Below, in pieces: positions 37,827 to 63,466 of a stretch of DNA of 64,000 nt. Below the pieces are notes generated by a model. The model saw only the letters and a program-made list of their open reading frames with translations, did not search any database and was not told where the DNA came from. The stretch's first letter is position 1. Every line of letters starts with the position of its first letter. Both the position numbers and the translations under genes were made by a program. Location: positions 433,195 to 497,194 of IMG/VR virus record IMGVR_UViG_3300017971_000185. One strand, given 5' to 3'.

Positions 37827-38810
37827 ATGCGTGCCATCCCGTGTCCTATTTCTCCACAGGAGCTTGAACAGCTTTATCGAGTAGAGAAACTCACTGACGA
37901 GCAGATTGTCGAACGCATCGGTGAGGAGGCGACGGTCAAGCGTGTTCGATCGTGGCGTAAGCGGTTTGGCATTCGCACGCTTCATCGATGGGAGCGTTAC
38001 GATGTGCCGCTGATTGAGGGGCGACTCAAGTCTTTGCTAGTTGGCTCAATGCTCGGTGATGGGAGGCTCGTTTACAGGACGCACGCAACCCACTACACGG
38101 AGAACCATGAGGAGGCTCAGAAGGCTTATCTTGAGTGGAAAGTCGCTCAATGGGGGTCGTCCTGGGTGCGTACGGAGCCCAAGCCCAGTGTCAAGAAGAA
38201 GGATGGGAAAACCTACCGTTCATGGCGATTCAACACGGTCGCCCATGCGATTCTGAATGATTGGCAAGCGCTTTTCTACGAACGGCGTGATCGCGGCTGG
38301 AAGCGTCTTGTCTCTGAGATCGTGGATCATGTAGACGAATTCGCGCTGGCCATCTGGTACCTCGATGATGGTTCTGCGGGATGGTGGCCTGACATCATAT
38401 TCGGTGCGGATGGGGAAAGCCGCAAGGTTGCGTGGGCCATCTTTGAAAAGTTCGGTCTCAAACCTCGGTGGCGGTTGGCGAAAGAGATGGCGGGTCGGGA
38501 GACAGGTACCTTTCACATGGAACGCGAAGACACTGCCGAGAAATTTCTCAACATTATCACACCACATGTCCCGGTCTGCATGGCGTGGAAACTCAGGGGT
38601 TTCGGTTACAACAGCGGTCGAAACAACATCATCAAGGGCAAGCTCGATTCCGAGGTCTTACGGGAGTTTGCGGCCGAGGGAATTCCAATTCGGCGCATAG
38701 CAAAGATTCTTGGGGTTGGTAGCTCCACGGTGGATCGCTATCTTCGGAAAAATGGGATCGAGCATCCCCGGACCAAGGGGAATCCAAACCATCGGAGAAC
38801 CCATGTCTAG
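37827..38810 (+). CDS. LAGLIDADG homing endonuclease with terminal HTH
   Basis: LVGSMLGDG and LAIWYLDDG; C-terminal IRRIAKILGVGSSTVDRYLRKNGI. Confidence 0.85.
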   Translation: MRAIPCPISPQELEQLYRVEKLTDEQIVERIGEEATVKRVRSWRKRFGIRTLHRWERYDVPLIEGRLKSLLVGSMLGDGRLVYRTHATHYTENHEEAQKAYLEWKVAQWGSSWVRTEPKPSVKKKDGKTYRSWRFNTVAHAILNDWQALFYERRDRGWKRLVSEIVDHVDEFALAIWYLDDGSAGWWPDIIFGADGESRKVAWAIFEKFGLKPRWRLAKEMAGRETGTFHMEREDTAEKFLNIITPHVPVCMAWKLRGFGYNSGRNNIIKGKLDSEVLREFAAEGIPIRRIAKILGVGSSTVDRYLRKNGIEHPRTKGNPNHRRTHV

Positions 38811-39597
38811 CTCGACTGACGCACTTCGAAAATATCGTGAGGGATTGCGTGGAACGGCTAAGTATCGTGAGATGCGGGAGTATGATTGGGATCGGGTCCG
38901 GGCCGATCCTGCCAAGCATGCCAAGCGAAGTAAGACCAAACGAATCAAGCATGCTCGACGGATGGAGGAAGACTCTGACTACAAGACCAAGGTGTTGGCG
39001 GGAAGTAAGAGAGCCAACGCTCGTTTGAGAGAGCTTCCTGAGCATGAACGCTCTGCCAAACTCCACAAGTGGCGTTTGAAGAGCAGCTATGGTCTTACGC
39101 CTGAAGACTACGAGGAGCTTTTGGCTTCTCAGGGGAATGCCTGCGCGATCTGCCAGACCAAAGAGCCTGGCGGTAAGCGTAAGGTCTTTTCTGTAGACCA
39201 TTGCCATGAGTCGGGAAAAATCCGGGGGCTTTTGTGTGCTGGCTGTAATCTGGGGTTGGGTAAATTCAAGGATGATCCTGAGCTGCTTTGTTCAGCCATC
39301 GCCTATCTGAAAGCAGCAGAAGGAAAGCCGTCTCCTGAGGATATGCTTCATACAGTCACCTGTTCTGATTGTGGGAAGCGGTGGAAGACCAGGAGAGTCA
39401 GAGGATTGGTTTGTCCAGAGTGCGAGGAAAAGCGGGCTCAGGAACGAGAGCGGCGTTGGAGGTTGCGTAGAACCAAACAGTGTCCCACATGCGGTGGTGG
39501 GTTTGTGGATGAAACGCAGGCCAACAACCGTAAGTACTGTTCTTCTCTGTGCTTGGCCAAGGCACAGGCTGTGCGTCGGAAGGAGCGGGATGCGTAG
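38803..39597 (+). CDS. Endonuclease VII-family His-Me nuclease with zinc ribbons
   Basis: YGLTPEDYEELLASQGNACAIC..VDHCHESGKIRGLLCAGCN. Confidence 0.88.
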   Translation: MSSSTDALRKYREGLRGTAKYREMREYDWDRVRADPAKHAKRSKTKRIKHARRMEEDSDYKTKVLAGSKRANARLRELPEHERSAKLHKWRLKSSYGLTPEDYEELLASQGNACAICQTKEPGGKRKVFSVDHCHESGKIRGLLCAGCNLGLGKFKDDPELLCSAIAYLKAAEGKPSPEDMLHTVTCSDCGKRWKTRRVRGLVCPECEEKRAQERERRWRLRRTKQCPTCGGGFVDETQANNRKYCSSLCLAKAQAVRRKERDA

Positions 39598-40765
39598 CAA
39601 GAGGCCACCGCGAGAAGTCTTGGAGAGCTTGGTCGCGGAGCTTTTGACGCAACAGCAGATTGCTGGTCGTTATGGTGTGGCTCAGGTAACGGTGAGTCGC
39701 TGGCTGCGGCATTATGGGATTGAGGCGTTGGGTAAGACGGGGAAGATTGATCGGGAGCTGCCGCCTCTGACCGCGATTCAGCAGGCGCTCGTCGTGGGAT
39801 CTTTGTTGGGGGACGGGACGATGAGTGCTCCCAGCTTTCGCACGGCACGGATTGCGGAGGGGCATGCGCTCAAGCAGCGGGAGTACACGGATTGGAAGGC
39901 CGGCATCATGGGATCTTACGTGTCCAATCAGTATGAGGCTACCAAACGGAAGGACGGCAAGACGTACAAGGCGTGGTGGTATTCGTCTCGGACGACGACT
40001 CGGCTGCGTCCTTTTTACGATATGTTTTACGGCAGCGGGCACAAGGTGTTTCCGAAGCAGTTACCTGAGTTGATGACGCCTTTTGTGCTTGCCGTGTGGT
40101 ACATGGATGACGGGAGCCGGTGGGGGAGGTACTACCCACGCATCTCCTACGGCCTGGATGCTCAGGGTCTAGACCGAGCTTTGGAGGCTTTGGCGATGTT
40201 GGGTTTGTCTCCAAAGGTATACACGAGCAAGAAGGGGCGCACGCTTCATTTTCCGGGGCAAGATGATCTTTTCTTTAGCTTGGTCCGAGAGCATGTGCAT
40301 TCGTGTATGGTTTACAAGCTGCCTCTTGAGCGTGTCCGAAAACGTTATGTGTTTGTTGCGGAGAGGCAGGATCGGAGGCCCGAGTTTATTTCTGCCCTGA
40401 CGCCGGAGCGTTTGCGGAAGATGTACGAAGGCGACCTGATGACGGATGGGGAGATTGCTGTTTGTGTTGCCAAGCGCTTTGGTGTTTCTCCGTTTCGTGC
40501 GGAGACTGTGCGGAGAGTCCGAAAGAAGTGGGGTATTCCGGCCATGACGAGTCAGGAACGGAAAGAGAGGAGGCGTGGGACTGCTCCGCGATTGACTGGC
40601 TTGACACGGAAGGTTTTGGAACGTTTGTACGTCGAGGATTTGCTAAGCGACACGGAAATTGGGAGAATCTACGGCGTGAGCAAGACGCCGATTCGGGCAC
40701 GACGCAGGGCATACGGGATTTTGGCCATTTCCAAGGCAGAACGAGCCAGGTTGAGGTTGGGTTGA
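39590..40765 (+). CDS. LAGLIDADG homing endonuclease with HTH modules
   Basis: VVGSLLGDG and LAVWYMDDG; TQQQIAGRYGVAQVTV; AGGAG RBS before ATG 39590. Confidence 0.85.
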   Translation: MRSKRPPREVLESLVAELLTQQQIAGRYGVAQVTVSRWLRHYGIEALGKTGKIDRELPPLTAIQQALVVGSLLGDGTMSAPSFRTARIAEGHALKQREYTDWKAGIMGSYVSNQYEATKRKDGKTYKAWWYSSRTTTRLRPFYDMFYGSGHKVFPKQLPELMTPFVLAVWYMDDGSRWGRYYPRISYGLDAQGLDRALEALAMLGLSPKVYTSKKGRTLHFPGQDDLFFSLVREHVHSCMVYKLPLERVRKRYVFVAERQDRRPEFISALTPERLRKMYEGDLMTDGEIAVCVAKRFGVSPFRAETVRRVRKKWGIPAMTSQERKERRRGTAPRLTGLTRKVLERLYVEDLLSDTEIGRIYGVSKTPIRARRRAYGILAISKAERARLRLG

Positions 40766-40807
40766 ACGGCATGCTTCAAAAAATCGTGAGGGATTGCGTA
40801 TGAGGAA

Positions 40808-42055
40808 GTGATGAGCGACGGATCGTTCAAGCGGTTTCTCGGGATTTCCGTTCTGGAGGCAGCGCGTCAGCGTATCTCTTGGACATTTGATGTGTTTGAG
40901 AAGATCTGCGTTTCGTTTTCGGGCGGGAAGGATTCGGGGGTCATGTTGCATCTTGTCATGGACGAAGCCATCAAGCGGGGTCGGAAGGTTCATGTCATGT
41001 TCATCGACTGGGAGGCGCAATACGATCTCACGATCAGCTACGTGCGGGATTGTTTCAAGCTGTATGAGGAGCACATCATTCCCTATTGGGTGTGTCTCCC
41101 GTTGACGACCACGAATGCGGTCAGCGTATACGAGCCCGAGTGGGTTTGTTGGGACCCGGCCAAGAAGGATTTGTGGGTACGTCCGCTGCCTGAGGGTGTG
41201 ATATCAGATCCTCGCGGGTTTCCCTTCTACGAAGACAAGATGACATTCGAGGACTTTGTCCCAGAATTCGGCGAGTGGTTTGGCCAGGATGCCGGCTCCG
41301 CCGCGTGTCTGATTGGTCTTCGGTCTGGGGAGTCGTTGAATCGGTTTCGGACGTTGATTAGCGATCGGAAGGTGACCAAGGATGGGAGGCAGTGGACGAC
41401 CAAGGTAGGGCAGCCGGGGACGTTCAATGTCTACCCGATCTATGATTGGCAAACGAAAGACGTTTGGACATATTACGGGGCGTTTGAGAAGCCGTACAAT
41501 CGGTTGTATGATCGGTTTTACCAGGCTGGGTTGTCGCTGCACCAGATGCGGATTTGCGAGCCCTATGGAGATGAGCAGCGCCGGGGCTTATGGTTGTTTC
41601 ACGTGATCGAGCCACAGACGTGGAGCCGCATCATGGCCCGTGTTGCGGGGGCGAATTCCGGCGCCTTGTATGCTGGCGAGCGTGGAAACATCTTGGGAAA
41701 TCAGAAGGTCACGCTACCTGATGGTCATACGTGGAAATCGTTTACGATGATGTTGCTCGATACGATGCCGCAGGCGACGGCTGAGCATTACAGGAACAAG
41801 TTTGCGGTCTATCTCAAGTGGTACAAGGACCACGAGGGTTTGGACGACGTACCTGATTCCGTGCCTGGTGATACAGGGTCGCGGGATGTGGGGTCTTGGC
41901 GTCGGATGGCGCGTTGCATCTTGAAAAACGACTTCTGGGCAAGTAGTTTGAGTTTCGGTCCTCAGAGAAATTCGGCGTACAAGAAGTATCAAGATCTCAT
42001 GAAACGCAGGCGCAGAGAGTGGGGTATTTTTGCAGAGACGGTGACAGATGAGTAA
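40808..42055 (+). CDS. ibrA: PAPS-reductase-family (DUF3440, IbrA/YbdN-like) protein
   Basis: VSFSGGKDS PP-loop, IGLRSGESLNR, YPIYDW, QMRICEPYGDEQR. Confidence 0.82.
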   Translation: MMSDGSFKRFLGISVLEAARQRISWTFDVFEKICVSFSGGKDSGVMLHLVMDEAIKRGRKVHVMFIDWEAQYDLTISYVRDCFKLYEEHIIPYWVCLPLTTTNAVSVYEPEWVCWDPAKKDLWVRPLPEGVISDPRGFPFYEDKMTFEDFVPEFGEWFGQDAGSAACLIGLRSGESLNRFRTLISDRKVTKDGRQWTTKVGQPGTFNVYPIYDWQTKDVWTYYGAFEKPYNRLYDRFYQAGLSLHQMRICEPYGDEQRRGLWLFHVIEPQTWSRIMARVAGANSGALYAGERGNILGNQKVTLPDGHTWKSFTMMLLDTMPQATAEHYRNKFAVYLKWYKDHEGLDDVPDSVPGDTGSRDVGSWRRMARCILKNDFWASSLSFGPQRNSAYKKYQDLMKRRRREWGIFAETVTDE

Positions 42056-49563: not shown

Positions 49564-50532
49564 ATGAAAACACCAAGTCTCAAGAGACTCGATTGGATGG
49601 CTTTCTTCGAATCGGAGTTGGGCATCTGCAATGGAGACCCGGACAATCCGGGTTATCCGAGGATGACGGAGGACGGCTATCTGGTGATCAGCGGTCCTTT
49701 CCTGAATCGTCTGGGACGCAATCAGTACGAGCGCATGGTGGAGACGGGCGAGCTGCCCGCAAAGGGGAATGCGATCCACATTCAGCGTGGAGCCCGGCTT
49801 GCTAACGTTGCTGAGGAAGCCATTGCTGCGGCTGATCCCAAGGAAGCCGGGAAGATCTTGGAGGATGCCCGTAGTAAGCGCGACAAAGAGGCTGAGGAGG
49901 GGAAGAAAAAGACAAGAGCCCGGTCGAGTGTCAAGTATCCAGAGGAGAAGGTTCACGATGCGCTGACTCGCACGTTCATCGATGACGCGATGTACGGATC
50001 GGTCTTGACGAGCACAGTTTACACAGCCCCTTCCATTCACGGCGCCGTCACTACGCGTATGGGCATGTCTCTTCATCCTGTGGAGCTACACAACATGACC
50101 AACACGCGCATGGCGTCTGATAGTGATGCGGTGGACCGTTCTCGCGACTTCGCGCGCTCTAAACCGGTTCGCTACGCGCTCATTCGCACTGTGGGAACCT
50201 TTGATGCTTTTCGGGCTGAGAAGAACCATGTCGATGCTGAGCGTCTCAAGGATTTCTTTGCCGTCTATCTGACGATGTGCGACAACGCGACATCGAATGC
50301 GCGCGGAACCTTCGGCCTTCGGGAGTTGATTGTGGTCAAGCACAAGAGCCCCACAGGCAGCATGAGTCTGATCGATTTCAAGGATCGGCTCAAGGTGCGT
50401 ATGCGGAATGGGGAGTGCCCGCGCTCGTTTGCCGACATCGAGCTTGGCTATGATGACAAGAACCTCCCTCCGGGGGCTGAGATCATCCGACTGGCTGAGC
50501 TACGGGGGAACTTGGATTGGCTGGTTAGCTGA
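49564..50532 (+). CDS. cas7: Type I-C Cas7 (Csd2), divergent
   Basis: CNGDPDNPGYPRMTEDG, FIDDAMYGSV, GAVTTRMGMSLHPV..TNTR. Confidence 0.85.
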   Translation: MKTPSLKRLDWMAFFESELGICNGDPDNPGYPRMTEDGYLVISGPFLNRLGRNQYERMVETGELPAKGNAIHIQRGARLANVAEEAIAAADPKEAGKILEDARSKRDKEAEEGKKKTRARSSVKYPEEKVHDALTRTFIDDAMYGSVLTSTVYTAPSIHGAVTTRMGMSLHPVELHNMTNTRMASDSDAVDRSRDFARSKPVRYALIRTVGTFDAFRAEKNHVDAERLKDFFAVYLTMCDNATSNARGTFGLRELIVVKHKSPTGSMSLIDFKDRLKVRMRNGECPRSFADIELGYDDKNLPPGAEIIRLAELRGNLDWLVS

Positions 50533-51197
50533 TGCCAAGTGTTTACTTTCAGGGCGACTTCGCCCACTTTTCCAACCCGCTGCTGAAGGCCGAGGGGACT
50601 ACCTTTCCCGGCCCTCCGCCTTCGGCTCTCCGCGGAGCCATTGAAAACATCCTGTTCAAGATGGGCGTCTACGTGGATGTCCGCCGCATCACGTACCACC
50701 GGCCGATTCGGACGATGAACTTCAAGACGAACGGCCTCAAACATGCGGTAGGCATGTCGCAGATCACGCTCCCGGATGCCCATCAGATGAACAACACGTT
50801 GCTCTACGACGTGGCCTATACAGTGGACTTCGATCTGCGCTTGTGTTGGCGTGACCGAGAGACCCAAGAGATCGTTAAGTTCGATGAGAGGGTGCTGGAG
50901 AGCCAGGATCTTCGGAAGTACATGGCGATGTACGAGAAGTATATCCGCCTGGGTAAGTGTCAGCACCCGCCTTGGCTGGGGTCGAAATTCTGCGAAGCTC
51001 TGTTCAGGGCACCCCGGCCCGAGGACACGCCGATTCAGGAGTCGCGGGACTTGGGGATGATGACGCACGGCATCGAGTACCGTAAGGCGGGGAACATCAC
51101 CCATGTCTTTCATCCGGTGATGAGAGACGGGGTTGTAGAGGTGGACTCGTTCTTCGATGTTCTCAAGGCCCGCTACGGGTTGAGGGCGGGTCAATGA
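50532..51197 (+). CDS. cas5: Type I-C Cas5 (Cas5c/Cas5d)
   Basis: GDFAHFSNP..PPPSALRGAIENI, LLYDVAY, PPWLG, DLGMM, PVMRDGVVEV. Confidence 0.88.
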   Translation: MPSVYFQGDFAHFSNPLLKAEGTTFPGPPPSALRGAIENILFKMGVYVDVRRITYHRPIRTMNFKTNGLKHAVGMSQITLPDAHQMNNTLLYDVAYTVDFDLRLCWRDRETQEIVKFDERVLESQDLRKYMAMYEKYIRLGKCQHPPWLGSKFCEALFRAPRPEDTPIQESRDLGMMTHGIEYRKAGNITHVFHPVMRDGVVEVDSFFDVLKARYGLRAGQ

Positions 51198-52870
51198 TTC
51201 GTCTCGACACACTCGTTGCCTTGGGGCAACGGGAAAAACTCGGCTATCTGCTCGATGACCAGCGGCCCTATGGGGAAGTTGTGTTGGATGCGGAGGGCCA
51301 CATCATCACTGTTCGCAAATCCTCTGGGGCGGTTCCCGTCCCAGACTTGCCCAATCGCACCAACTCCGAGTTGCGCATTGGGATGTATGTCGAGAACGAG
51401 ATGTATCTCTTTGGGACGACTCCGAAGGAGTACAAGGACCCCACGAAGCCTAGGAAAGCGCTGGAGCACGCTGCTGAAGCCTATGCCAAGATCGCCAAGG
51501 AAGTGCGGATCAAAGCCACACAGGCGGTCGCGCGGTTCTACGACTTGTCTCTAAGGGGCAAGCACAAGGTGCCGAAGGGGTGGCGATTTCAGCGGTATGT
51601 GTTTGTCTATAAGGACCAATACCTGCCCAGCGTTCCGCAGCTTCGCCCTGTGATTGAGAAATTTGTAGATGCCATTCCTAGCGTGGACAGCATCGAAAGG
51701 CAGTGCTTGATTACGGGAGAGTGGGTGCGGTGTCAGACGACGCCCCACGCAAACACCAAAGGACTTAGCTCCAACTCCAGTGGAGCGTCCTTTGTGAGTT
51801 TCAATGGGACAAGTCAGTACCAGGGGCGTCCCGAGGATCGGTTCTTGACGGCTCCCATCGCCCCTGGTGTATCTCGACTCATGACTTCAGCGCTTTCGTG
51901 GTTGAGCCGGAATCGTAGAATCCAACTCACGCCCGATCTCAATGTCTTGGTCTGGACTGAGGAAGGCCACCCGCTAGAGGCTCTCGGGCCGAAGTTGTTT
52001 GCGCCAGAGAAGGAGTCCCGAGAACAGCGAACGAAACGCGAAGAGGAAGCCGTTGGTGACCTCTTCGCTCATCCTGAGTGGGATGAGAGCACGGAGGCCG
52101 CCTACCTCCTGACAACGACTGGGAATATGGGTCGCTTCGCGGTCCGTGAGTGGGAGGAAACGACTGTCGGCAGGCTCTCTGCCAATCTGAGGCGGTTCGT
52201 TCAGGACTTCACAGTCGAGATCACAGTTGGGGAAGAGGAAGTCCAAGCTCGTCACACGTCTCTCTCGCGGCTGTACGCAGCGTGGTCCGATAGGCAGGTG
52301 GTACACCGTGACATCCTTGCCCTAGCCAACATGGCGCTCAAAGGAATGCCGGTACCAGAGTGTGCGTGGCCCTCCGGTGCGCCAGAAACCATTATCCAGA
52401 AAGCCATCTTTCAAGCGTATAGGAAACGGAACATGGAGAATCCAGGAAATTTCACAGCGGACATCAGCGTAGACGGGCAGTCGAATGCTTACCGGATGGG
52501 ACGGGCTTGTGCCGTCATGGAGGACGCTCGGTACAGCGCGAACAGAGCCAACAGTCGGGGGGTGATCGCGCACAATGTGGTTGACAACCCGTCTGTTGGG
52601 TTTCACCGGGCGATGCAGTCCATCATCCACCATTTGCCCAAGCGCCCAGGCAATCAGTACGCTGAGAGTCTCAGCGTGTTCACCAGCGGGATCGAAATTC
52701 CTGATCGGTTTGCTGTTCGGGAGCAGAACGAGTTTTGGCTGGGGTATCTCTACGAGCAGGGCCGTCAAAGCTACTTGTATAGGCTGGGGCGCGATGCCAA
52801 GAGCGCCAAGAAGAGCGAGCAGGGCGCGGATGGCCAGGACGTAGACGCCAGGGCATTGCTTGATGATTGA
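51194..52870 (+). CDS. cas8c: Type I-C Cas8c (Csd1)
   Basis: CLITG..PH..KG..ASFVSFN, TSALSWL, VLVW, AYRMGR..FWLGY. Confidence 0.82.
   Translation: MIRLDTLVALGQREKLGYLLDDQRPYGEVVLDAEGHIITVRKSSGAVPVPDLPNRTNSELRIGMYVENEMYLFGTTPKEYKDPTKPRKALEHAAEAYAKIAKEVRIKATQAVARFYDLSLRGKHKVPKGWRFQRYVFVYKDQYLPSVPQLRPVIEKFVDAIPSVDSIERQCLITGEWVRCQTTPHANTKGLSSNSSGASFVSFNGTSQYQGRPEDRFLTAPIAPGVSRLMTSALSWLSRNRRIQLTPDLNVLVWTEEGHPLEALGPKLFAPEKESREQRTKREEEAVGDLFAHPEWDESTEAAYLLTTTGNMGRFAVREWEETTVGRLSANLRRFVQDFTVEITVGEEEVQARHTSLSRLYAAWSDRQVVHRDILALANMALKGMPVPECAWPSGAPETIIQKAIFQAYRKRNMENPGNFTADISVDGQSNAYRMGRACAVMEDARYSANRANSRGVIAHNVVDNPSVGFHRAMQSIIHHLPKRPGNQYAESLSVFTSGIEIPDRFAVREQNEFWLGYLYEQGRQSYLYRLGRDAKSAKKSEQGADGQDVDARALLDD
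52433..52870 (+). CDS. cas11: Putative Cas11c by internal translation of cas8c
   Basis: AGGA..CGGA RBS and in-frame ATG just before the SNAYRMGR segment, where type I-C Cas11 normally begins. Confidence 0.55.
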   Translation: MENPGNFTADISVDGQSNAYRMGRACAVMEDARYSANRANSRGVIAHNVVDNPSVGFHRAMQSIIHHLPKRPGNQYAESLSVFTSGIEIPDRFAVREQNEFWLGYLYEQGRQSYLYRLGRDAKSAKKSEQGADGQDVDARALLDD

Positions 52871-55070
52871 CGTGTGTCAATTCGTCACCGGCCTCTCCTC
52901 GGACAGAGGAGAGGCCGAATCTTCTGGCCCCGACTCTCTGTGGGAGCATCAGCAGTTTGGGTTCCTTGATGTAGTAGACCACATCCTGAATCGGAAGGAG
53001 AAGCAAGTTGGGCTGTCTGGCCAGCCAGGGTGTGGTAAGACGCGCCTTACGACGTATATTGCGGCTTACTTGGCCAAGTCTCCGGTGTCTCCTATCACTA
53101 GAGTAGTCGTTGTGGTCCCGACCCAGATCATTCGGGACCAGTACAGAGGACAGAAGTCTGTAGTCCGGTTTGGGGCTGTTGAGGACGTAGCTGGGGAGGG
53201 CCCGAACAACAAAGCTGTCATCTCGGTCCCTGACATTGACTTAGGGAAGCTGATAGACCCTATGGTGGCTGGTCCAAAATATCTCGTGGACCACGTCACA
53301 GGTGCCGGCAAGCCGAGAGTCATCCTTGCCACGACTATGGACACCTTTCGCAGAGCCCTAGATTGCATTGGCGACATGAGCCATGTGTTAGTCGTTCTCG
53401 ATGAGGCGCATCGGTTCCCTGTAGGAGAATTCAAAGCATGGGCAAAGGCCAGAGTCGCTTGTGAGGAGAAGAGTGCCACTATCCTTGCCACGACGGCTAC
53501 GATGTACCGAGCGGACGGGCTTCCGATTTGTCCTGGTGCGTACATACACCAAATTCCCCGGATCAAACTGATTGAGGCTGGCCTCTGCCCAAGTCGCTTT
53601 CCTGTAAAGGTTGTTCTCCTTCCCTCCGTCGCTAAGACAGCGACGGAGGTAGTGGATGTCCGTGTGAAAGGGGAAGGAACGGAAGGAACCCTTGTAGAGC
53701 TTCTGACCGATGACGATCTCCGTTTTGGGGTGCGGCATTGGGTTGGTCTGGGATGCCCGTTTGGCCTCATGCGATGCCAAACCCAGGCGTTGACCAAGCG
53801 CTTGAAAGAAATTGTCGAGGAGGAGTGTCCCCACCTGAAGGCTGAGGAGGTGGGGCGCCCCGTTGTGGATCTTTCGGGCAAAGAGGTAGACAAGATGTGG
53901 CCCGTTGTGGATCTTTCGGGTTCCAAGGTGAACAAGGCGTTGGAGGCCCAGATTGCGCATGATGGCCGTGTGCGGCATGCCAATGAGATACGGACACAGC
54001 TAGTTGTGGGCATTCGACGTGTTGAGTGTGGTTTCGACTGGCCTCCGGTATCTCATGTCTTCAACTTCGGGCTCATTTCGTCTGAGACCCTCCTGGCCCA
54101 GCTTCGAGGACGGGGTTGGCGTTCGAAGACGAGATACGAGGGCTACCCTGAGCGGTTTCGGGATGAGGCGTGGCTCATCATGTTTGTGCCGACTGTGTCA
54201 GAGGAAGCTCGAACGGAGTTTCTGAGGAGCCCTGATCATCTCAAGCTGTTGATGATCATCGCGGCGACCACGGTCAATGAAGAGGCAGGTACTCTGCTGT
54301 CGTTCATCCATGATGAGATCCAGAAGGGGTTGTCGCGGTATGTGCGTGGGTACCGGGACCAGTTGCAGGTCATCCGTATCCTGGGGGCCCTCAACCCTGA
54401 GCCCAGAGAGATGGACGAAATACGGGCTGATCTTGGAAAGATCGAGACTCGGCTCGGAGGCGATGTGTCCGTTTCGGACTACATCAGAGAGATTGTCTTA
54501 GAGTCGCGGGACGAGAAGAAGCGTGGGGTCGTGAAGAGAAAGTGGTCGAGACGACGGAAGCTCGGAGCCCTGATTCTTTTGTTGGGGCAGAAGGGTCAGT
54601 CCAAGAAAGAGACCGCGCGGCTGATTCGGGAGCTTCTGGACAAGAAGAAATCGGTTACGCTCGTGGAGAGTCCTGAGCAGGTTTCAGATGAGGTTCGCTC
54701 CGTGCTTGCAGATGCTCTCAATCAGTTGGTTGAGAAGCATGGCGACATTGTTACCTTCACGGACACATACGAGGAGATGGCGGCCACCATGAACACCGAT
54801 GTGGACACTATCCGTCGCATGCAGCGAGAGGTGGACCGTCTGACACAATTCAAGCCTCGCAGCTATCAGGTTGCTGTTGAGGCTGTTAGCCAAGAGTTGG
54901 TTCACTGCGGAAGGCGGTGGAAGGTTCTCCAGGACCTTTCCGGGCCTCTTGGCTTGGACCCAGGGACCTACACAATGCGTCATCTCGATCGCGATCTACG
55001 ACATCAGGTGTTGAAAGGCCAGCCAGAGGACATCAACAGTTTGAGAGACTTGAGGCATGCGTTTCGGTAA
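52860..55070 (+). CDS. SF2 (DEAH) helicase without HD nuclease domain
   Basis: LWEHQ, GQPGCGKT, LDEAH, TAT, VECGFDWP, QLRGRGWR; motif I starts ~50 aa from the N-terminus. Confidence 0.8.
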   Translation: MMIDVCQFVTGLSSDRGEAESSGPDSLWEHQQFGFLDVVDHILNRKEKQVGLSGQPGCGKTRLTTYIAAYLAKSPVSPITRVVVVVPTQIIRDQYRGQKSVVRFGAVEDVAGEGPNNKAVISVPDIDLGKLIDPMVAGPKYLVDHVTGAGKPRVILATTMDTFRRALDCIGDMSHVLVVLDEAHRFPVGEFKAWAKARVACEEKSATILATTATMYRADGLPICPGAYIHQIPRIKLIEAGLCPSRFPVKVVLLPSVAKTATEVVDVRVKGEGTEGTLVELLTDDDLRFGVRHWVGLGCPFGLMRCQTQALTKRLKEIVEEECPHLKAEEVGRPVVDLSGKEVDKMWPVVDLSGSKVNKALEAQIAHDGRVRHANEIRTQLVVGIRRVECGFDWPPVSHVFNFGLISSETLLAQLRGRGWRSKTRYEGYPERFRDEAWLIMFVPTVSEEARTEFLRSPDHLKLLMIIAATTVNEEAGTLLSFIHDEIQKGLSRYVRGYRDQLQVIRILGALNPEPREMDEIRADLGKIETRLGGDVSVSDYIREIVLESRDEKKRGVVKRKWSRRRKLGALILLLGQKGQSKKETARLIRELLDKKKSVTLVESPEQVSDEVRSVLADALNQLVEKHGDIVTFTDTYEEMAATMNTDVDTIRRMQREVDRLTQFKPRSYQVAVEAVSQELVHCGRRWKVLQDLSGPLGLDPGTYTMRHLDRDLRHQVLKGQPEDINSLRDLRHAFR

Positions 55071-55689
55071 GGCCAAGGAAGTTTCGCGGGAGAACAATCT
55101 CCTTCACGTGATGAACAGCTATTTGCTGTTCTCGGGCGGCAAGATGCGAGTCGATTGGCTGGAGGTGCCGGGCGAAGGCTCTCCGATGGTGAGAATCCTT
55201 CGATCCTATCTCGTACCGGGCGTGTCCAAGCTCGTTTGTTTGGATCGTAACGCCGAGTACGTCCGGGAGGGCGAGGAGCAATACGGGAGTGAGATCTGCG
55301 AGTGGGTTTTGGCCGATGACTTGTTTGCCGAGCTAGCTAATTCACCGGACAAGTACGCTAACGTAGGGGTTCTGAATGTCGATCTCTACAACAGCCTTCG
55401 TCTGCTCGAATTCCCCGAACAGATGCGGATCGTCATGGAGTTTGCCACACGCCAGTTCTGGGCGATCGGGGCCTTCATGGTGTTTCTGAACTACTCGATG
55501 CGAGGCAGTGTTCGCGAGGAGTTTGCTCAAGACGTGATCAAGACTCTGGAGCCTTATCTAGATTTGTCACAGGTTGATCTCACTGATGAGGGCTACCTGT
55601 ACAAAGGAGGAACGCCTGACCAACCAGGCAACCGGAGATTGAATCTTCGGATACACCTAGGACCAACAAGGACACCGAACAATGAGTAA
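55057..55689 (+). CDS. Putative class I SAM-dependent methyltransferase-like protein
   Basis: Rossmann-like order WLEVPGEGS (motif I), LVCLDRN (acidic end of beta2), VLNVDLY, VFLNYS. Confidence 0.45.
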   Translation: MRFGKAKEVSRENNLLHVMNSYLLFSGGKMRVDWLEVPGEGSPMVRILRSYLVPGVSKLVCLDRNAEYVREGEEQYGSEICEWVLADDLFAELANSPDKYANVGVLNVDLYNSLRLLEFPEQMRIVMEFATRQFWAIGAFMVFLNYSMRGSVREEFAQDVIKTLEPYLDLSQVDLTDEGYLYKGGTPDQPGNRRLNLRIHLGPTRTPNNE

Positions 55690-56020
55690 GAAGAACGATG
55701 ATCTGGAGGCGGTTCGTGTGATCGCTGATGCGCTTGAACCGTTTGATGATGTCGTCAGGGAGCGTATTCTGAAATGGGCATGTGAGCGGGTCGGGATGCA
55801 CCCCAAGGAGATCAAGATCATACATGAGACACAAACTGCCTATTCGGAAGACGGTGGGGGTGGGAAGAGCCCCGCCGAGAAGGCAGCCAGGACCAGGAAG
55901 GCCAATGCTGAGAAGCGCTCTGAGGCCGCCAGGAAAGCGAACAAGACCAGGGGGAAGAAGGGGCGATCCGAGGCCGCAAAGAAGGCAGCGGCTACGCGTC
56001 GTGCTTGTCAGGCTGCCTAG
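55682..56020 (+). CDS. Small protein with basic histone-H1-like AxKAxxTR repeats
   Basis: AEKAARTRK, EAARKANKTRG, EAAKKAAATRR. Confidence 0.65.
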   Translation: MSKKNDDLEAVRVIADALEPFDDVVRERILKWACERVGMHPKEIKIIHETQTAYSEDGGGGKSPAEKAARTRKANAEKRSEAARKANKTRGKKGRSEAAKKAAATRRACQAA

Positions 56021-56076: not shown

Positions 56077-56229
56077 CCTGAGGTTTCCTTCTGCGGGGCG
56101 ATTGCGAGTACAACGAGCTTTCTGACATTCGCAGAGTAGAACACGTCAGCGCTGTTCAGGCGCGCGATTTCACCCCTCGTGCATAACCTGCGATTACGAG
56201 CAATGATTTCAGCAGGTTCTAAGCCAAGG

Positions 56230-56558
56230 GTTTCCGCCCTGTTACGGGGCGGTTGCGATTACAAGGAAGAGCCGCTGGACCTGAGCGCAGCCACCAAGCT
56301 GTTTCCGCCCTGTTACGGGGCGGTTGCGATTACAAGAGCCGTGAACGAGCAGGAATGCGCCCAAATCCTGGCCGAGTTTCCGCCCTGTTACGGGGCGGTT
56401 GCGATTACAAGGCCATGAGCTTGGCGCTCATTGATTCGAGGGCCGCTGCGTTTCCGCCCTGTTACGGGGCGGTTGCGATTACAAGATCGAGATTCTGCGG
56501 TGGACACGCGCCAGCATGTTGAGTTTCCGCCCTGTTACGGGGCGGTTGCGATTACAAG
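56230..56558 (+). CRISPR. Block A: 5 identical 36-nt repeats
   Basis: GTTTCCGCCCTGTTACGGGGCGGTTGCGATTACAAG at 56230, 56301, 56376, 56450, 56523; spacers 35, 39, 38, 37 nt. Confidence 0.97.
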
Positions 56559-56592
56559 GATTGCACGGCCTACGAGGGGTTTCCGCTCTCTC

Positions 56593-56836
56593 TTCCGTCT
56601 CCGGCCTCGAATCGAGGAGGCGGTTTCGATTGCAACGCACGCGGATGCGAAACTCCGTCTTCTCCAAGTCTGTCTCCGCGGGAGGCGGTTTCGATTGCAA
56701 CATGTCGTGCGTCGAGACATCCAGAGTGGGTTCCGTCTCCGCGGGGAGGCGTTTCGATTGCAACACCAACGGCGGTCAGGGAGTTGGAGCATGGGATTGC
56801 GTTCCGTCTCCGCGGGGAGACGGTTTCGATTGCAGT
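56593..56836 (+). CRISPR. Block B1: 4 variant repeats
   Basis: Consensus GTTCCGTCTCCGCGGGGAG(G/A)CGGTTTCGATTGCAAC at about 56593, 56668, 56730, 56801. Confidence 0.85.
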
Positions 56837-56863
56837 ATGTTGGTGGTGGAATCCTCGCCGAGT

Positions 56864-56893
56864 AGAGCCCCCTCAAACGAGGGGGCTCTTTTT
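56864..56893 (+). terminator. Intrinsic terminator inside the array
   Basis: AGAGCCCCCTC-AAAC-GAGGGGGCTCT (11-bp stem) followed by TTTT. Confidence 0.85.
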
Positions 56894-56939
56894 CCCAGTC
56901 TTCGATTACAACTACGCCATTCGGCCCCAAGGCGATCTC

Positions 56940-57345
56940 GTTTCCGCCCTCCTGCGGAGCGGTTGCGATTACAACGCTCTCACCGGCCTCAGTGTTCTCT
57001 ACTCCTTCTGGTTTCCGCTCCTCTGCGGAGCGGTTGCGATTACAACTACCGGACCGACAGCTACACCAATCTGATCAGAAAATCGAGCACCGTCGCATCG
57101 GACAGTGGTTTCCGCTCCTCTGCGGAGCGGTTGCGATTACAACTAATCGGTTTCCACCGCCGAGGGAGAACCCCGCACGTTTCCGCCCTCCTGCGGGGCG
57201 GTTGCGGTTACAACGTGACGGTCACAGGTCGAATTTCGTCTGCCCGGTCCGCCCTCCTGCGGGGCGGTTGCGATTACAACGCTACCGAGAGATCGCGGAA
57301 CGGTTGGGTGTTTCCGCCCTCCTGCGGGGCGGTTGCGATTACAAC
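56940..57345 (+). CRISPR. Block C: 6 repeats
   Basis: GTTTCCGC(C/T)C..TGCGG(G/A)GCGGTTGCGATTACAAC at 56940, 57011, 57108, 57179, 57247, 57310. Confidence 0.93.
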
Positions 57346-57376
57346 CTGCACGCTCAGCCGCCCACGAGGGTACGAG

Positions 57377-57841
57377 GTTCGTCTCCGAGGGAGACGGTTT
57401 CGATTGCAACCAGATGTGGGATGCAGTGTCCGTGTCCGCCTCTCACGGAGGCGGTTTCGATTGCAATTTCGTTGGCTCTCACTGATCGGTTTTTCGTGTT
57501 CCGTCTCCGAGGAGGCGGTTTCGATTGCAACCCCACTGACCTCAGCGCCATACGACGGTTCCGTTCCGTCTCCGAGGAGACGGTTTCGATTGCAACCTCC
57601 ACCCACGTCGTGTAGGTGCCGCCCCGTAGAGGGGCGGTTTCGATTATAACACGCGGGACTCGGGAAGAAGTTGAACCCGGATCGTTGGGTCCGCCCTTTT
57701 GGGCGGTTTCGATTACAACAATCAAGGTGGTACGTCATTTCGGGAGAGGGAGCGATTGCGATTACAACCGCATGATGTCCTGGATGGGCTTGATCGTTGA
57801 GGTTTCCGCTCTCTGCGCTACGGAGGGCGGTTGCGATCAAC
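57377..57841 (+). CRISPR. Block B2 plus hybrid/degenerate repeats
   Basis: B-type at 57377, 57434, 57498, 57563; hybrids at 57616, 57689; degenerate at about 57746 and 57802. Confidence 0.85.
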
Positions 57842-60103: not shown

Positions 60104-61216
60104 GTGACCAAGGAAAGCAAATTCAAGCAACGCGTGCGTGATCGTATGGAGAGGACGGGCGAATCCTACGCTACTGCTCGACGCAACGAGAATGAGGCTG
60201 CGGGTTTGATCGAGGAGATGAAGGCAGTGGATGCTGAGCTTAGTGAGCTAGAGAAAGCTCAGCTAGAGCGCGAGAAGGTCAATCGTCAGTGGGTGAAGGA
60301 CAACCCAGGGCTCAAGGTTGTGACGCTGACGTTGACGCATAACGAGCACGGGACGCCGACGATTCACGTGTCGGGTCCTGAGCTTACGTCCATCCAGATC
60401 ACCCAGCCGCCTGACGTATACGTGGAAGCCATCCGACAGGCGTACCAGGACAACGAGTGGGCGAAGAACCCGAAGGACGATCTTGGTGATCTTCCCGAGT
60501 GTCGTTTGGAGGACTCCAAGCGCAAAGAGGACTTTGTCTACGAAAGCGGACCCGCGCCCGAGGGCACGATTCATGAGGACTTTGATGCGTTGGTGGCGGC
60601 GCTGTACAAGGTGAAGGGCCGTGTCATGTCTGTGGATCATCCGAACCATGGGCTTGTCGGGTTTGTGGAAACCGAGACGGACAAGTACCACTGGATACGG
60701 ATCAAGCCGACTCTTGCCTGGACTGAAACGGTCGCTTGGGAACATCTAGAGCTTTGGGGCCTGATGCAGACGCCGCGAGGGCGTTGCAAGGCCGCGGGTC
60801 TTTTCAGCCAGGAAGAGATGCTGGCGAAGGTGTCGTCGGCTCTAGAGGGCTGGTGGAAGAGTGCCTCTCCGTTTCCGACCAATCCTGATCCTGCGGAGAT
60901 CGTTGCTCCGCTTTCTGGAGAAGCGTTGGCTGATGTGTTTGCTCACGTCGAGAAATTCGATGTTTCGGTTGAGGCGATTGTGATGTCGGCGCGCAGTTTC
61001 CATGAGGTTTGTAAGCACGCAAGCGACAGCATCCGCTTGGAAACTCGTGCCCGGCTGATGAAGAAAGGGCTAATGGGTCGCCTGTGGGATGCTCTCGTGA
61101 TCACGACCCGAGAGATCGATGAGGATGAGATATGTTTCTTGGGTCGGGATCCCGAGGGGAAGTGGGTGTGTCACTCGCTTCGTGTGATTCGGCCATCTGC
61201 GCAGGGTTCAGAGTGA
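60104..61216 (+). CDS. Protein with C-terminal partial MCP paralog
   Basis: N-terminal KFKQRVRDRMERTGESYATARR; 60902-61111 is 28/70 identical, ungapped, to MCP 37323-37532. Confidence 0.8.
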   Translation: MTKESKFKQRVRDRMERTGESYATARRNENEAAGLIEEMKAVDAELSELEKAQLEREKVNRQWVKDNPGLKVVTLTLTHNEHGTPTIHVSGPELTSIQITQPPDVYVEAIRQAYQDNEWAKNPKDDLGDLPECRLEDSKRKEDFVYESGPAPEGTIHEDFDALVAALYKVKGRVMSVDHPNHGLVGFVETETDKYHWIRIKPTLAWTETVAWEHLELWGLMQTPRGRCKAAGLFSQEEMLAKVSSALEGWWKSASPFPTNPDPAEIVAPLSGEALADVFAHVEKFDVSVEAIVMSARSFHEVCKHASDSIRLETRARLMKKGLMGRLWDALVITTREIDEDEICFLGRDPEGKWVCHSLRVIRPSAQGSE

Positions 61217-63466
61217 CCTTCCGTGTTTTCGGAAGGCGATCCCGAGATTCCTTGCCCTGAGCTTGTCGTCTGCCCAGCACAGCCTGCATTCGCTACACGT
61301 CAACCCGGACAAGGTCTGCGCCGGGCAAGGGGCCAGCGACCAACCCGTCCCAGGTACCTGGAATACCTGACCGTCGGGAGATAGAGCAGGCACAATGACG
61401 GCAGGCGCGTACCCCATTGACACGACCCTCTTGATGTCTTCCACCGTGTCACAGGAGCCAAGGACGCTCGCCCGCCGAAACGCGGCGCGTGGGATCCACG
61501 CTGCCGAGTGAGTGTACGTCCACAGAGCCGTTCCCCTGTTCGCCAACCACCAGTCCGCGAGCCCAGCAACCATTTTTGCCTGACCGACCGTCGTCACGTC
61601 TCCACCACCATCGTGTAGACATAAGGCGAGCCCTTGGGGATCGGGAAATTTCTCCTTCGCAAGTTTGGCCTCAGCCGCGATAATTTCGTCGGCCGTCCAG
61701 TTTCCGTCTTTCGCTATTCGCTCAAGCCGCTTTGAGTTGCAAGGGTGTGCGTAGCATCCGTTGTCGCGCAGGGGGCAACTTGGCGGGCATGTTTGTTTGA
61801 TGGGAATCGAGGTTGAGATGATTTGAGAGATCGGCTTGGAGCCTCGGATCGGTGCATGTATTGCGACGGGTGGTTGGCGCGTTTTTGAAGAGATCCCGTG
61901 TTTGCGGAGATGGCAGATCACAGTTGATGGGGACACTTCCAGAGCTTGAGCGATGGTTTGATTGGTTGCTCCCTCTGCTACCATCTGTCGAAGAACATCC
62001 GCATCGAGGGGCTTGGGTTTCGGCCGCTCGATCCCATGTTTGCGGAGATGGTACGCCACAGTTGATGGGGACACTTCCAGAGCCCGAGCGATGGTCCGAT
62101 TGGTTGCTCCCTCTGCCACCATTTGTCGAAGAACATCCGCATCGAGCTTTCGAGCGGTGGTTTGGTTGGGTTTCTCTGCCACAACCTTCCGCTCGATCCC
62201 GTGTTTGCGGAGATGGTACGCCACAGTTGATGGGGACACTTTCAGAGCCCGCGCGATGGCCTGATCGGTTGCTCCCTCTGCTACCATCTGTTGAAGAACG
62301 TCCGCATCGAGAGTTTTCTGTTTCGGCCGCTCGATCCCGTGTTTGCGGAGATGGTACGCCACAGTTGATGGGGACACTTTCAGAGCCCGCGCGATGGCCT
62401 GATCGGTTGCTCCCTCCATCGTCATTTGTCGAAGAACATCCGCATCGAGGGGCTTGGGTTTTGGCCGCTTGATCCCGTGCTTGTGGAGATGGTACGCCAC
62501 AGTCGAGATAGACACTTTCAGAGCCCGAGCGATGGTCCGATTGGTTGCTCCCTCCATCACCATTTGTCGAAGAACATTCGCTTCTATGGTGGTTTTGCAG
62601 CGCTGCGATGGTGGAGGGGCGGCCTTCCAAAGCTCCTGTTGCCATTCGGAGAAACTGTCGAAATCGCGTCCGTTAGTGTAAGCCCATCGTTTGAGGAGAC
62701 GGCTGCGTTTGGGTTCGGGCGTCTTGCACCAAGCGATGTAATTCAGCAGCCATCGAAAGTTGGTCAGGGTTTTCGGAATCTCTGCGGGAAACCTTCGTGG
62801 GAAGATTTGTCGGAGGATTCTCTGAAGAGTCTCTTGTTTCCAGGCTCTAGTCTCGATCTGGAAAGGCGCGTACCACCCTGCCTTTTTTCCAGCAGACATC
62901 CAGGCTTGGATTTGAGCCTTGGTCTGGTCGGCCGATGCGTATTCTCTGCGGTACGATTTAGAGAAAAAATGCTTTCCGTCCGGCAGGCTTTCCAGCAAGC
63001 GTTTCTGTTTCGGTTCGATTTTTCCGAGAACGTATCGCCTGCGCCATGTTTCTAGCCACCATTTCCACTTTTTCTGGGAGCGTAGTTCCCAAAGAGATTG
63101 AGACTTTGTTAGGTGCTTGAGTCGGGTGATCCTGTCAAGCCATCGGGCGTGTGGGTATTTGCCGTCATTGTGGACTCGGTTGTTCCAGGTCCACCCGTCT
63201 AAGCTCTCAAGCAGCCGTATGCGATCTTGTGTTAGCTCTCCGTTGCGGTACATTCGGCGCTGATAAGCTATCCATTTCCCTATTGGTCGTCCGTCTCTTC
63301 GATCCGTGTAGCGGATTTGGTCGGCGCCACCACGTTCTTCCGATTCGGCAAGCACTTCGTAGTACGTCCCCATCCACTGGGCTGTCGAAAACGGTTGTGA
63401 TCGCTTCCGCCATCTTCGAAGGTCCCTCATCCAGTCTTTTTCGACGCACTGATCTCGGCTTGGCAT
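61208..63466 (-). CDS. Fusion: helicase-associated (HA)-like repeats + 5 HTH repeats + Cys-rich gp88-like domain
   Basis: IGKWIAYQRRMY..RIRLLESLDGWTW; 5x LDADVLRQM..HLRKHGI; TCPPSCPL..GCYA, LHDGGGD, WTYTH, CPAQT..CSECRLC. Confidence 0.75.
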   Translation of the reverse strand: MPSRDQCVEKDWMRDLRRWRKRSQPFSTAQWMGTYYEVLAESEERGGADQIRYTDRRDGRPIGKWIAYQRRMYRNGELTQDRIRLLESLDGWTWNNRVHNDGKYPHARWLDRITRLKHLTKSQSLWELRSQKKWKWWLETWRRRYVLGKIEPKQKRLLESLPDGKHFFSKSYRREYASADQTKAQIQAWMSAGKKAGWYAPFQIETRAWKQETLQRILRQIFPRRFPAEIPKTLTNFRWLLNYIAWCKTPEPKRSRLLKRWAYTNGRDFDSFSEWQQELWKAAPPPSQRCKTTIEANVLRQMVMEGATNRTIARALKVSISTVAYHLHKHGIKRPKPKPLDADVLRQMTMEGATDQAIARALKVSPSTVAYHLRKHGIERPKQKTLDADVLQQMVAEGATDQAIARALKVSPSTVAYHLRKHGIERKVVAEKPNQTTARKLDADVLRQMVAEGATNRTIARALEVSPSTVAYHLRKHGIERPKPKPLDADVLRQMVAEGATNQTIAQALEVSPSTVICHLRKHGISSKTRQPPVAIHAPIRGSKPISQIISTSIPIKQTCPPSCPLRDNGCYAHPCNSKRLERIAKDGNWTADEIIAAEAKLAKEKFPDPQGLALCLHDGGGDVTTVGQAKMVAGLADWWLANRGTALWTYTHSAAWIPRAAFRRASVLGSCDTVEDIKRVVSMGYAPAVIVPALSPDGQVFQVPGTGWSLAPCPAQTLSGLTCSECRLCWADDKLRARNLGIAFRKHGRSL
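61884..62587 (-). repeat. Five tandem HTH-coding repeats (period 138 nt, one 165 nt)
   Basis: Near-identical units, e.g. CATCCGCATCGAG recurring at about 61997, 62135, 62299, 62437. Confidence 0.92.

Follow-up and report, generated by a model that had tools for sequence, protein, structure and literature searches.

A mosaic CRISPR array of covarying repeats in a helicase-associated, type I-C-like locus of a 0.5-Mb phage

Introduction

Huge phages have been reported to carry a variant of the type I-C CRISPR and CRISPR-associated (Cas) system that is without Cas1 and Cas2, has a helicase in place of Cas3 and encodes a Cas5d-like protein as the presumed processing enzyme; phage spacers directed against structural genes of other phages have also been reported already (Al-Shayeb et al. 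2020, PMC7162821). Here we describe a CRISPR array and the adjacent cas genes in positions 433,195 to 497,194 of IMG/VR virus record IMGVR_UViG_3300017971_000185. This stretch of 64,000 nucleotides (hereafter the window) is the final 64 kb of a 497,194-bp record, 94% complete by CheckV, that represents a phage of ~0.5 Mb. The locus resembles the huge-phage variant as set out in the variant's description and in Extended Data Fig. 9 of PMC7162821: the phage exceeds 200 kb (here 497,194 bp), there are Cas5d-like, Cas8c and Cas7 proteins and no Cas6, Cas1 and Cas2 are lacking, an unrelated helicase takes the place of Cas3, and spacers target structural genes of other phages. It differs in having no second array, as judged by a repeat profile over the whole genome, and the likeness itself is judged by the published description only. 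Because the locus fits that description (PMC7162821), the type of system is already known. A limited literature search, covering the keyword-matched passages of PMC7162821, found no mention there of mosaic covarying repeats or their recurrence in further viral type I-C arrays without adaptation genes, of a methyltransferase-fold gene or of a solitary repeat, which are the features described below.

Canonical type I-C systems (Dvulg) share with this locus a repeat of ~33-37 nucleotides (nt) with a GC-rich hairpin and a single-stranded tail ending in GAUU..AAC, and an effector composed of Cas5, Cas8c and Cas7. They differ in gene order (cas3-cas5-cas8c-cas7-cas4-cas1-cas2, against cas7-cas5-cas8c here), in possessing the Cas3 HD-helicase and the cas4-cas1-cas2 adaptation module, and in the handle, which is GGAUUGAAAC as against CGAUU(A/G)CAAC here. 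The canonical type I-C locus used as a control (L097, with cas4-cas1-cas2) has 15 uniform repeats, whereas the repeats here are heterogeneous. Type IV-A3 systems of plasmids are likewise borne on a mobile element, have no adaptation module, use a helicase for a nuclease and act in conflicts between mobile elements (Benz et al., 10.1101/2023.06.23.546257). Their effector belongs to a different family, and they have a compatible host type I-E system with similar repeats and leader, whereas no compatible host array was found here (10.1101/2023.06.23.546257 for the type IV-A3 system).

A further likeness is to virus mini-arrays, solitary units and the atypical repeats of CRISPR-associated transposons, all of which are off-consensus repeats of mobile elements that Cas proteins can still use (for a review, see PMC11656645); the phage described here has a solitary repeat of its own. 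Such elements usually mimic host repeats and come without effector genes of their own. In contrast, this array has an adjacent full effector set, ~24 units and no known host counterpart. We rejected a host-mimicking mini-array or RNA anti-CRISPR, as effector genes are adjacent and exact-tail searches of species-representative genomes and metagenome contigs showed no matching array.

Results

The array occupies 1.76 kb of the window (56083-57841) and consists of ~24 repeat units, all on the + strand, as delimited by repeat finding and alignment to three consensus types. Unit lengths range from 31 to 44 nt, and the spacers are unique; those of block A measure 35-39 nt, the others 18-61 nt. The 21 intact units comprise 15 distinct repeat sequences. 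The window contains 24 occurrences of the tail motif TTKCGATTRCAAS with at most one mismatch, where 0.56 would be expected; none of 100 shuffles reached this number, and 23 of the 24 lie inside the array. A tail-like match at 38600-38612 was dismissed as chance, being without a hairpin and inside a gene. Across the 497-kb genome the repeat profile found the array locus and one solitary copy, and nothing else. Rfam contained no CRISPR direct-repeat (CRISPR-DR) or other family matching the repeats. Tandem Repeats Finder gave no report for the array, which is uninformative, since its silence follows from the spacers being unique. The units and interruptions are arranged as follows.

56083..56200, + strand: degenerate units R0 (56083-56114) and R0b (56165-56200), non-folding (folding free energies, dG, of -2.7 and -5.4, no better than shuffles)
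56230..56558, + strand: block A, five identical 36-nt repeats ending in ACAAG
56579..56592, + strand: 5'-half repeat remnant between blocks A and B, preceded by a spacer cut down to 20 nt (read from the sequence)
56593..56836, + strand: block B, four units with stem CCGTCTCC and tail TTTCGATTGCAAC
56865..56893, + strand: intrinsic-terminator-like hairpin inside the locus, an 8-bp GC stem followed by T5
56900..56912, + strand: tail-only repeat remnant (CTTCGATTACAAC)
56940..57345, + strand: block C, six units with tail TTGCGATTACAAC, spacers of 29-35 nt and one of 61 nt
57377..57719, + strand: block D, with D1-D4 B-like (57377-57596) and D5-D6 intermediate, spacers of 18-40 nt
57745..57841, + strand: degenerate terminal units, E1 (a tail without hairpin) and E2 (a stem of 10 bp, its tail 2 nt short)

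Individual units depart from their block in several ways. B1 has a 10-nt loop insertion, B3 is short of one G and has lost a basal pair, and the tail of B4 ends in CAGT. Units C2 and C3 are identical, while C1 is a hybrid with a C.A mismatch. D5 and D6 combine CCGCCC(C) stems with TTTCGATTAYAAC tails, and the terminal units E1 and E2 carry a G..A-type tail again. The first 13 nt of the half repeat at the A/B junction recur in unit E2, and the terminator-like hairpin together with the tail-only remnant divides the locus in two. The initial annotation of this DNA, made from the sequence alone, had described blocks in the order A-B-C-B. This order held roughly (five A units, four B, six C and four B-like D units), leaving out the intermediate D5 and D6, the degenerate ends R0, R0b and E1 and the internal split. 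A model in which distal units form older strata was rejected, because the most distal units, E1 and E2, return to the G..A-type tail. All of the stems listed in that annotation are present: CCGCCC/GGGCGG in block A, C4-6 and D6, CCGCTC(C)/(G)GAGCGG in C2 and C3, CCGTCTCC/GGAG(G/A)CGG in B1-4, D1, D3 and D4, CCGCCTC/GAGGCGG in D2 and CCGCCCC/GGGGCGG in D5. Its loop lengths of 4-7 nt need correction, as the minimum-free-energy structures have loops of 3-5 nt and, in B1, of 13 nt.

Each intact unit folds into the same hairpin of 6-8 bp followed by an unpaired 13-nt tail; R0, R0b and E1 do not fold. In a covariation alignment of 24 units, 19 of them distinct, 96.9% of stem cells were in standard pairs, compared with 42-67% when the 3' partner was slid by 1-3 columns. 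Double-sided changes were present in four of the seven stem pairs, and the covariation score was reached in 0 of 500 shuffles. The three basal pairs (C-G, C-G, G-C) and the tail are almost invariant, whereas the upper stem and loop vary, with the four upper pairs alternating between C-G, U-A and U.G. The covariation test and the folding of all intact unit types thus substantiate the earlier proposal that compensatory changes preserve one hairpin and one tail. The stem cells include 17 U.G pairs against 4 unpaired, and total folding energy is lower for the + strand (-249.9 kcal/mol) than for the - strand (-212.5). The U.G excess and the lower energy of the + strand point to transcription of that strand, which is the direction of the cas genes.

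The tail consists of TT followed by (G/U)CGAUU(A/G)CAAC and is identical to the canonical type I-C handle UGGAUUGAAAC at 7-9 of 11 positions. The architecture of the units, a hairpin and then a handle, is that of type I-C repeats, whose canonical 11-nt handle ends in AUUGAAAC. This alignment suggests that the tail is the 5' handle of the following CRISPR RNA (crRNA) and the hairpin the 3' handle; the tail had at first been taken for a 3' handle, an assignment that type I-C homology reverses. Cas5d is described as recognising the stem-loop base together with the 3' overhang, and as leaving an 11-nt tag (PMC5965381). The parts that are invariant here, stem base and tail, are exactly these reported determinants (PMC5965381). 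The tails fall into two discrete classes, each tied to particular stems.

The same array was recovered from several assemblies. A 372-kb IMG/VR contig covers 21.7 kb around the locus with one mismatch and is 100% identical over the array, a 498.8-kb JGI contig has the identical array, and an 86.8-kb IMG/VR contig is identical up to its own end at window position 56687, inside block B. In Logan, contigs from four runs of sediment and seawater studies lie on the locus without a single differing letter. There was no informative between-strain variation among the matching assemblies and runs. An assembly artefact, which the initial annotation had named as a way in which its proposal could fail, is contradicted by this identity across three other assemblies and four runs from different studies. 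Long open reading frames (ORFs) do cross the array, for example one of 377 amino acids (aa) at 56516-57649, as a protein-coding tandem repeat might have. However, these ORFs have no family match, the repeat periods of 54-97 nt are not multiples of three, and cas genes are adjacent. We consider the artefact and protein-coding readings refuted, and assign them a negligible probability.

We also compared the array with those of other loci. A single relative (L093) has the same order, cas7-cas5-cas8c-helicase followed by a gene for a 213-aa protein, and its contig ends in an apparent repeat start with yet another stem; the relatives P0004, P0007 and P0009 lie on contigs too short for comparison. 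Locus L203 (11070-11600) has cas3-cas5-cas8c-cas7 followed directly by an array, and is cas1-less, with phage-like small ORFs. All 8 of its repeats are different, with an invariant TTGAAAC tail and spacers of 30-38 nt, and its stems covary (81% paired against 42-64% when slid, with double changes in 5 of 8 pairs). Among 23 IMG/VR loci found with a Cas7 profile, mean pairwise repeat identity was 0.93-1.00 in cas1-adjacent arrays and 0.62-0.99 in loci without cas1 (one-sided Mann-Whitney p ~0.01, small n). Two other array forms were seen in viral type I-C loci. The uniform array at L220:9456-9924, with short spacers of ~20-30 nt, lies between cas8c and cas7, and three-unit mini-arrays follow cas7 at L222:10840-11011 and L224:3318-3441, with wholly different stems and the same AATTGAAAT tail.

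Targets were found for spacers of block A. In run X6, a 5.2-kb contig (depth 24.7, the phage being at ~40) carries window 56411-56449 with one mismatch and unrelated flanks, and short contigs carry window 56270-56300. A flank string of the 5.2-kb contig led to a 23.3-kb IMG/VR contig of the target phage. Spacer A3-A4 (56412-56449) matches the head-maturation-protease gene of this contig at 37 of 38 positions, antisense, and spacer A1-A2 (56266-56300) matches its portal gene at 33 of 35, sense; the last 17 nt of spacer A2-A3 (56337-56375) match its major-head-protein gene exactly. Three block-A spacers therefore match a single foreign viral contig, and the presence of protospacers on both strands fits DNA targeting. 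The cas-proximal block A thus has as its targets the portal, major-head and prohead-protease genes of a smaller phage from the same samples, a case of competition between phages. A 3' flank CNCGGC is shared by two protospacers only, and that of the third, partial match differs. Spacer C5-C6 matches the target phage over 16 nt, which is within chance and was set aside. No spacer matched the phage's own genome, and none matched INPHARED phages or PLSDB plasmids.

The initial annotation had further proposed that the array was built from several donor arrays and had suggested a search for each repeat type in candidate hosts. Among 2.9 million IMG/VR contigs the tail pattern located arrays in contigs of the same phage only, and a two-tail pattern did likewise in GTDB species-representative genomes and JGI metagenome contigs, with no host array in either; these searches required exact tails. 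Other tail matches were single chance matches in genes, such as that in L056. A 40-nt contig made up of the C2/C3 repeat alone had ~2x the phage depth in runs X6 and X9, which is what its two copies in the phage would by themselves produce. The proposal of several donors is consequently without direct evidence, no other array with these tails having been found in the three collections. Nevertheless, some rearrangement is still needed, since the multi-site signature of block B occurs in two separated blocks.

The cas7, cas5 and cas8c genes, a helicase gene, a gene for a 210-aa protein and a 112-aa ORF lie at 49564-56020, all on the + strand. The array follows directly downstream on the same strand, with 63 bases between the last ORF (112 aa) and the first repeat. 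The annotated genes of the window that bear on the identity of the phage and of the system are listed below.

11417-13588: large terminase gene
49564..50532, + strand: cas7 (Csd2-like, divergent); Pfam Cas_Cas7 7.4e-37, PADLOC Cas7b/Cas7c (I-B/I-C) models
50532..51197, + strand: cas5 (Cas5d/Cas5c-like, presumed endonuclease for the crRNA precursor); Pfam Cas_Cas5d 6.5e-11, PADLOC Cas5c 3e-30
51194..52870, + strand: cas8c (Csd1-like large subunit); Pfam Cas_Csd1 1.4e-42, PADLOC Cas8c
52860..55070, + strand: superfamily 2 helicase of 736 aa in the place of Cas3, without an HD domain; Pfam ResIII/DEAD/Helicase_C only
55057..55689, + strand: 210-aa protein (P0152) with a predicted class I S-adenosylmethionine (SAM)-methyltransferase-like fold; ESM Atlas structure matches
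55682..56020, + strand: 112-aa ORF, the last before the array, with a Lys/Arg/Ala-rich C-terminus; from the ORF list, translation read by eye

The cas7, cas5 and cas8c genes (49564-52870, +) are thus adjacent to the repeats in the same orientation, and Pfam, NCBIfam and PADLOC matches in these genes uphold the identification of the repeats as the CRISPR array of a phage-borne type I-C-like system. The Pfam matches of Cas7, Cas5 and Cas8c exceed the gathering cut-offs, whereas NCBIfam type I-C models match below theirs, which marks the three proteins as divergent. Only 3 relatives of Cas7 below 1e-30 were found among 1.84 billion representatives, and Cas8c is nearly an orphan in a 5.8-billion protein set. 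Cas5 is homologous to the solved Cas5d/Cas5c chains 3kg4, 8g9t and 7kha. The helicase matched no Cas3 model in PADLOC and had no sequence match in the PDB; a homologue occupies the same operon position in L093.

Six-frame searches of the whole 497-kb record found no Cas1, Cas2 or Cas3-HD, and so confirmed the earlier statement that the phage is without Cas1 and Cas2. No Cas6 was seen within the operon, and no whole-genome Cas6 search was made. A lone sub-threshold match to the Cas4 family (PD-(D/E)xK) at G000:C1:423843-424181 (L229), ~65 kb upstream of the array, sits in a 316-aa frame and probably belongs to a recombination nuclease of the phage, not to an adaptation gene.

The 210-aa protein had no Pfam match and is nearly an orphan in the protein set. 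Its ESM Atlas matches are to several methyltransferase families, with template-modelling (TM) scores of 0.64-0.73, and by eye it has a G-x-G-type motif (LEVPGEGS) followed by an acidic strand end (LVCLD). A single-sequence AlphaFold2 model was unusable (predicted local distance difference test, pLDDT, 36). The protein is 40% identical to the 213-aa protein at the same operon position in the related locus (L093:5926-6567), and possibly represents a new accessory of the type I-C variant with an associated helicase. The exact protein is found on 14 contigs, the longest of 527,654 bp, and a longer assembly of the phage than the 497-kb record therefore exists. The 112-aa ORF had no family match. 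Its C-terminus is repetitive, with a histone-like or DNA-binding look, and it has no counterpart at the same place in L093.

The solitary repeat is at L001:1500-1535 on the - strand (G000:C1:280487-280522), outside the window. It folds well (dG -13.9) and has a G..A-type tail, with no second repeat nearby. It lies between two + strand genes, and its tail overlaps with the stop codon of an ORF of 172 aa. A second hairpin, CCGCTC/GAGCGG, lies ~20 nt upstream of it on the same strand, and farther up is a TTGACA-containing stretch; the flanks of the locus appear as loose ends in read data. The solitary repeat could yield a lone crRNA-like or regulatory RNA.

Other features of the window were noted in passing. 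A 752-aa protein (61208-63466, -) has many helix-turn-helix/HNH-like DNA-binding modules, with 55 PHROG families matched, and its gene contains tandem DNA repeats of ~138 bp with 81-89% identity (61892-62581). Five consecutive giant ORFs of 1155, 1510, 1015, 1523 and 1371 aa occupy 14281-34584 (+). At 39371-42055 (+), a LAGLIDADG/HNH-type homing-endonuclease-like gene adjoins a gene like that for 3'-phosphoadenosine 5'-phosphosulfate (PAPS) reductase (PHROG 2302, 1e-90).

Discussion

Taken together, the results make it moderately probable that this is a helicase-associated, adaptation-less type I-C locus of a ~0.5-Mb phage, whose array is frozen and undergoes drift and recombination under selection for processing by Cas5. 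Transcription of the array would follow the + strand, probably together with the cas operon or immediately after it. Recognition of the hairpin base (CCG...CGG) and the single-stranded tail would fall to the Cas5d-like protein, which would cut at the 3' foot of the stem. Each crRNA would then start with an I-C-like 11-nt 5' handle (N-CGAUU-R-CAAC), continue with a spacer and end in a 3' hairpin, and would be loaded into a Cas7/Cas8c CRISPR-associated complex for antiviral defence (Cascade) that acts on DNA with the helicase. Where Cas1-Cas2 is present, it copies the first repeat at each acquisition and so homogenises the array; without it this homogenisation would cease and each repeat would drift singly, with survival only of changes that preserve hairpin and handle. 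That requirement would account for the compensatory and G.U-intermediate substitutions, and single-repeat drift under selection for processing would account for the repeats being nearly all unique in blocks B, C and D, and for L203. Drift alone is insufficient for the recurrence of the B signature, the terminal G..A tail, the C1 hybrid, the A/B half repeat and the spacers of 61 nt and 18-25 nt, which need recombination. Repeats or segments from at least two repeat lineages, with G..A and T..G handles, may have recombined to produce the block order, the hybrids and the cut spacers.

Block A is presumably the youngest addition, the work of a genuine adaptation machinery that acted either in trans from a host or prior to capture of the segment. 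It looks adaptation-made because it is uniform, lies nearest to the cas genes and is aimed at a phage in the same samples. Spacer acquisition in trans has been shown for type IV-A3 systems (10.1101/2023.06.23.546257) and offers a possible route by which a uniform block A could be added.

Several observations weigh against this reading. The terminator-like hairpin at 56865-56893 is strong and could stop transcription before blocks C-E, and no promoter was predicted in or before the array. Many distal spacers are 18-25 nt long, too short for a type I complex, which suggests decay. Targets are detectable for block A only; exact 24-mers of spacers A4-A5, B3-B4, C1-C2 and D5-D6 were found in IMG/VR in the phage itself and nowhere else. 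The 5' flanks of the two good protospacers are TTT and ATG, with no consistent protospacer-adjacent motif, and in one target two mismatches fall at spacer positions 3-4, which may allow that phage to evade interference. Active-site residues of Cas5 differ in part in this variant, according to its description by Al-Shayeb et al. (PMC7162821). The cas1 comparison is small, its loci are not phylogenetically independent, and the cas1-less loci L217, L220 and L226 have uniform repeats. Finally, selection for the covariation seen between repeat lineages may have acted in ancestral arrays and not in this phage.

Some of the same observations would suit a decaying relic, in which block A, perhaps with block B, is the only part transcribed and used and everything beyond the internal terminator is a fossil with hairpins not yet eroded. 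The terminator-like hairpin, the targets found for block A alone, and the distal spacers of 18-30 nt with repeat indels and degenerate end units all speak for it. We hold it to be somewhat doubtful, since D2, D5, D6 and E2 have perfect or extended stems that differ by compensated changes, the repeat indels fall in loops or shorten stems symmetrically, and the tail is conserved in all blocks; absent database targets are weak evidence. The blocks themselves might instead be a patchwork, each recombined from a different uniform-repeat donor locus of a host or phage, with the compensatory differences selected in the donors. This would fit the multi-site signatures that distinguish the blocks, the appearance of the B signature at two separate places, the half repeats and cut spacers at junctions, and a block A of five identical repeats with normal spacers against a contemporary phage although the genome is without Cas1/2. 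However, capture of uniform arrays leaves unexplained that almost every unit differs within B, C and D, and in L203 all repeats differ without forming blocks. The empty searches of other IMG/VR contigs, GTDB representatives and JGI metagenome contigs, and a depth of the C2/C3 contig explained by two phage copies, likewise make such an origin unlikely.

Loss of spacers through recombination between repeats is an established process, and dissimilar repeats may have been selected as a protection of spacers that are irreplaceable without Cas1/2. The concentration of heterogeneous repeats in adaptation-less viral type I-C loci and the 15 distinct sequences in 21 intact units agree with such adaptive diversification. 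Yet in the youngest block five adjacent repeats are still identical, as are C2 and C3; the hybrid C1, the double-length 61-nt spacer and the cut spacers indicate that the array was not spared deletions and rearrangements, and uniform repeats occur in some loci without cas1. As neutral drift under structural constraint predicts the same pattern with no positive selection, we think adaptive diversification quite improbable. The two discrete tail classes, each linked to particular stems, invite a division of labour in which UCGAUUGCAAC units (9 of 11 positions as in the canonical type I-C handle) load a host type I-C Cascade and GCGAUUACAAC units that of the phage. The B/D class is nearer to the canonical handles of L097 and L203, and use of host Cas proteins by some phage arrays is proposed by Al-Shayeb et al. 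(PMC7162821). This idea, purely inferential, seems very unlikely to us, given that no host array or system was found in GTDB representatives or JGI metagenome contigs, that the intermediate tails of D5 and D6 blur the division and that the phage has a single Cascade gene set. A broader combination, in which the repeats of mobile elements without Cas1-Cas2 differ by selected design except in the Cas5-read base and handle, so stabilising their spacers and possibly serving two handle classes, and in which the methyltransferase-fold gene and the helicase would effect a non-nucleolytic, perhaps modifying interference, we likewise regard as quite improbable.

Read as a frozen array drifting and recombining under selection for processing, the locus amounts to a natural mutational scan of a type I-C repeat, with 15 working-looking variants in which nothing is fixed but the three basal stem pairs and the tail; in the upper stem pairing suffices, and the loop is free. 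These variants would map what this Cas5 and its Cascade read, which is testable, and could serve as a template for non-repetitive synthetic arrays. The locus also provides a clear case of phage-versus-phage targeting, against portal, capsid and protease genes, by a little-studied type I-C variant that has a helicase associated with it. More generally, it gives a picture of how an array may evolve after the loss of its adaptation genes, through constrained drift and recombination, with one uniform young block.

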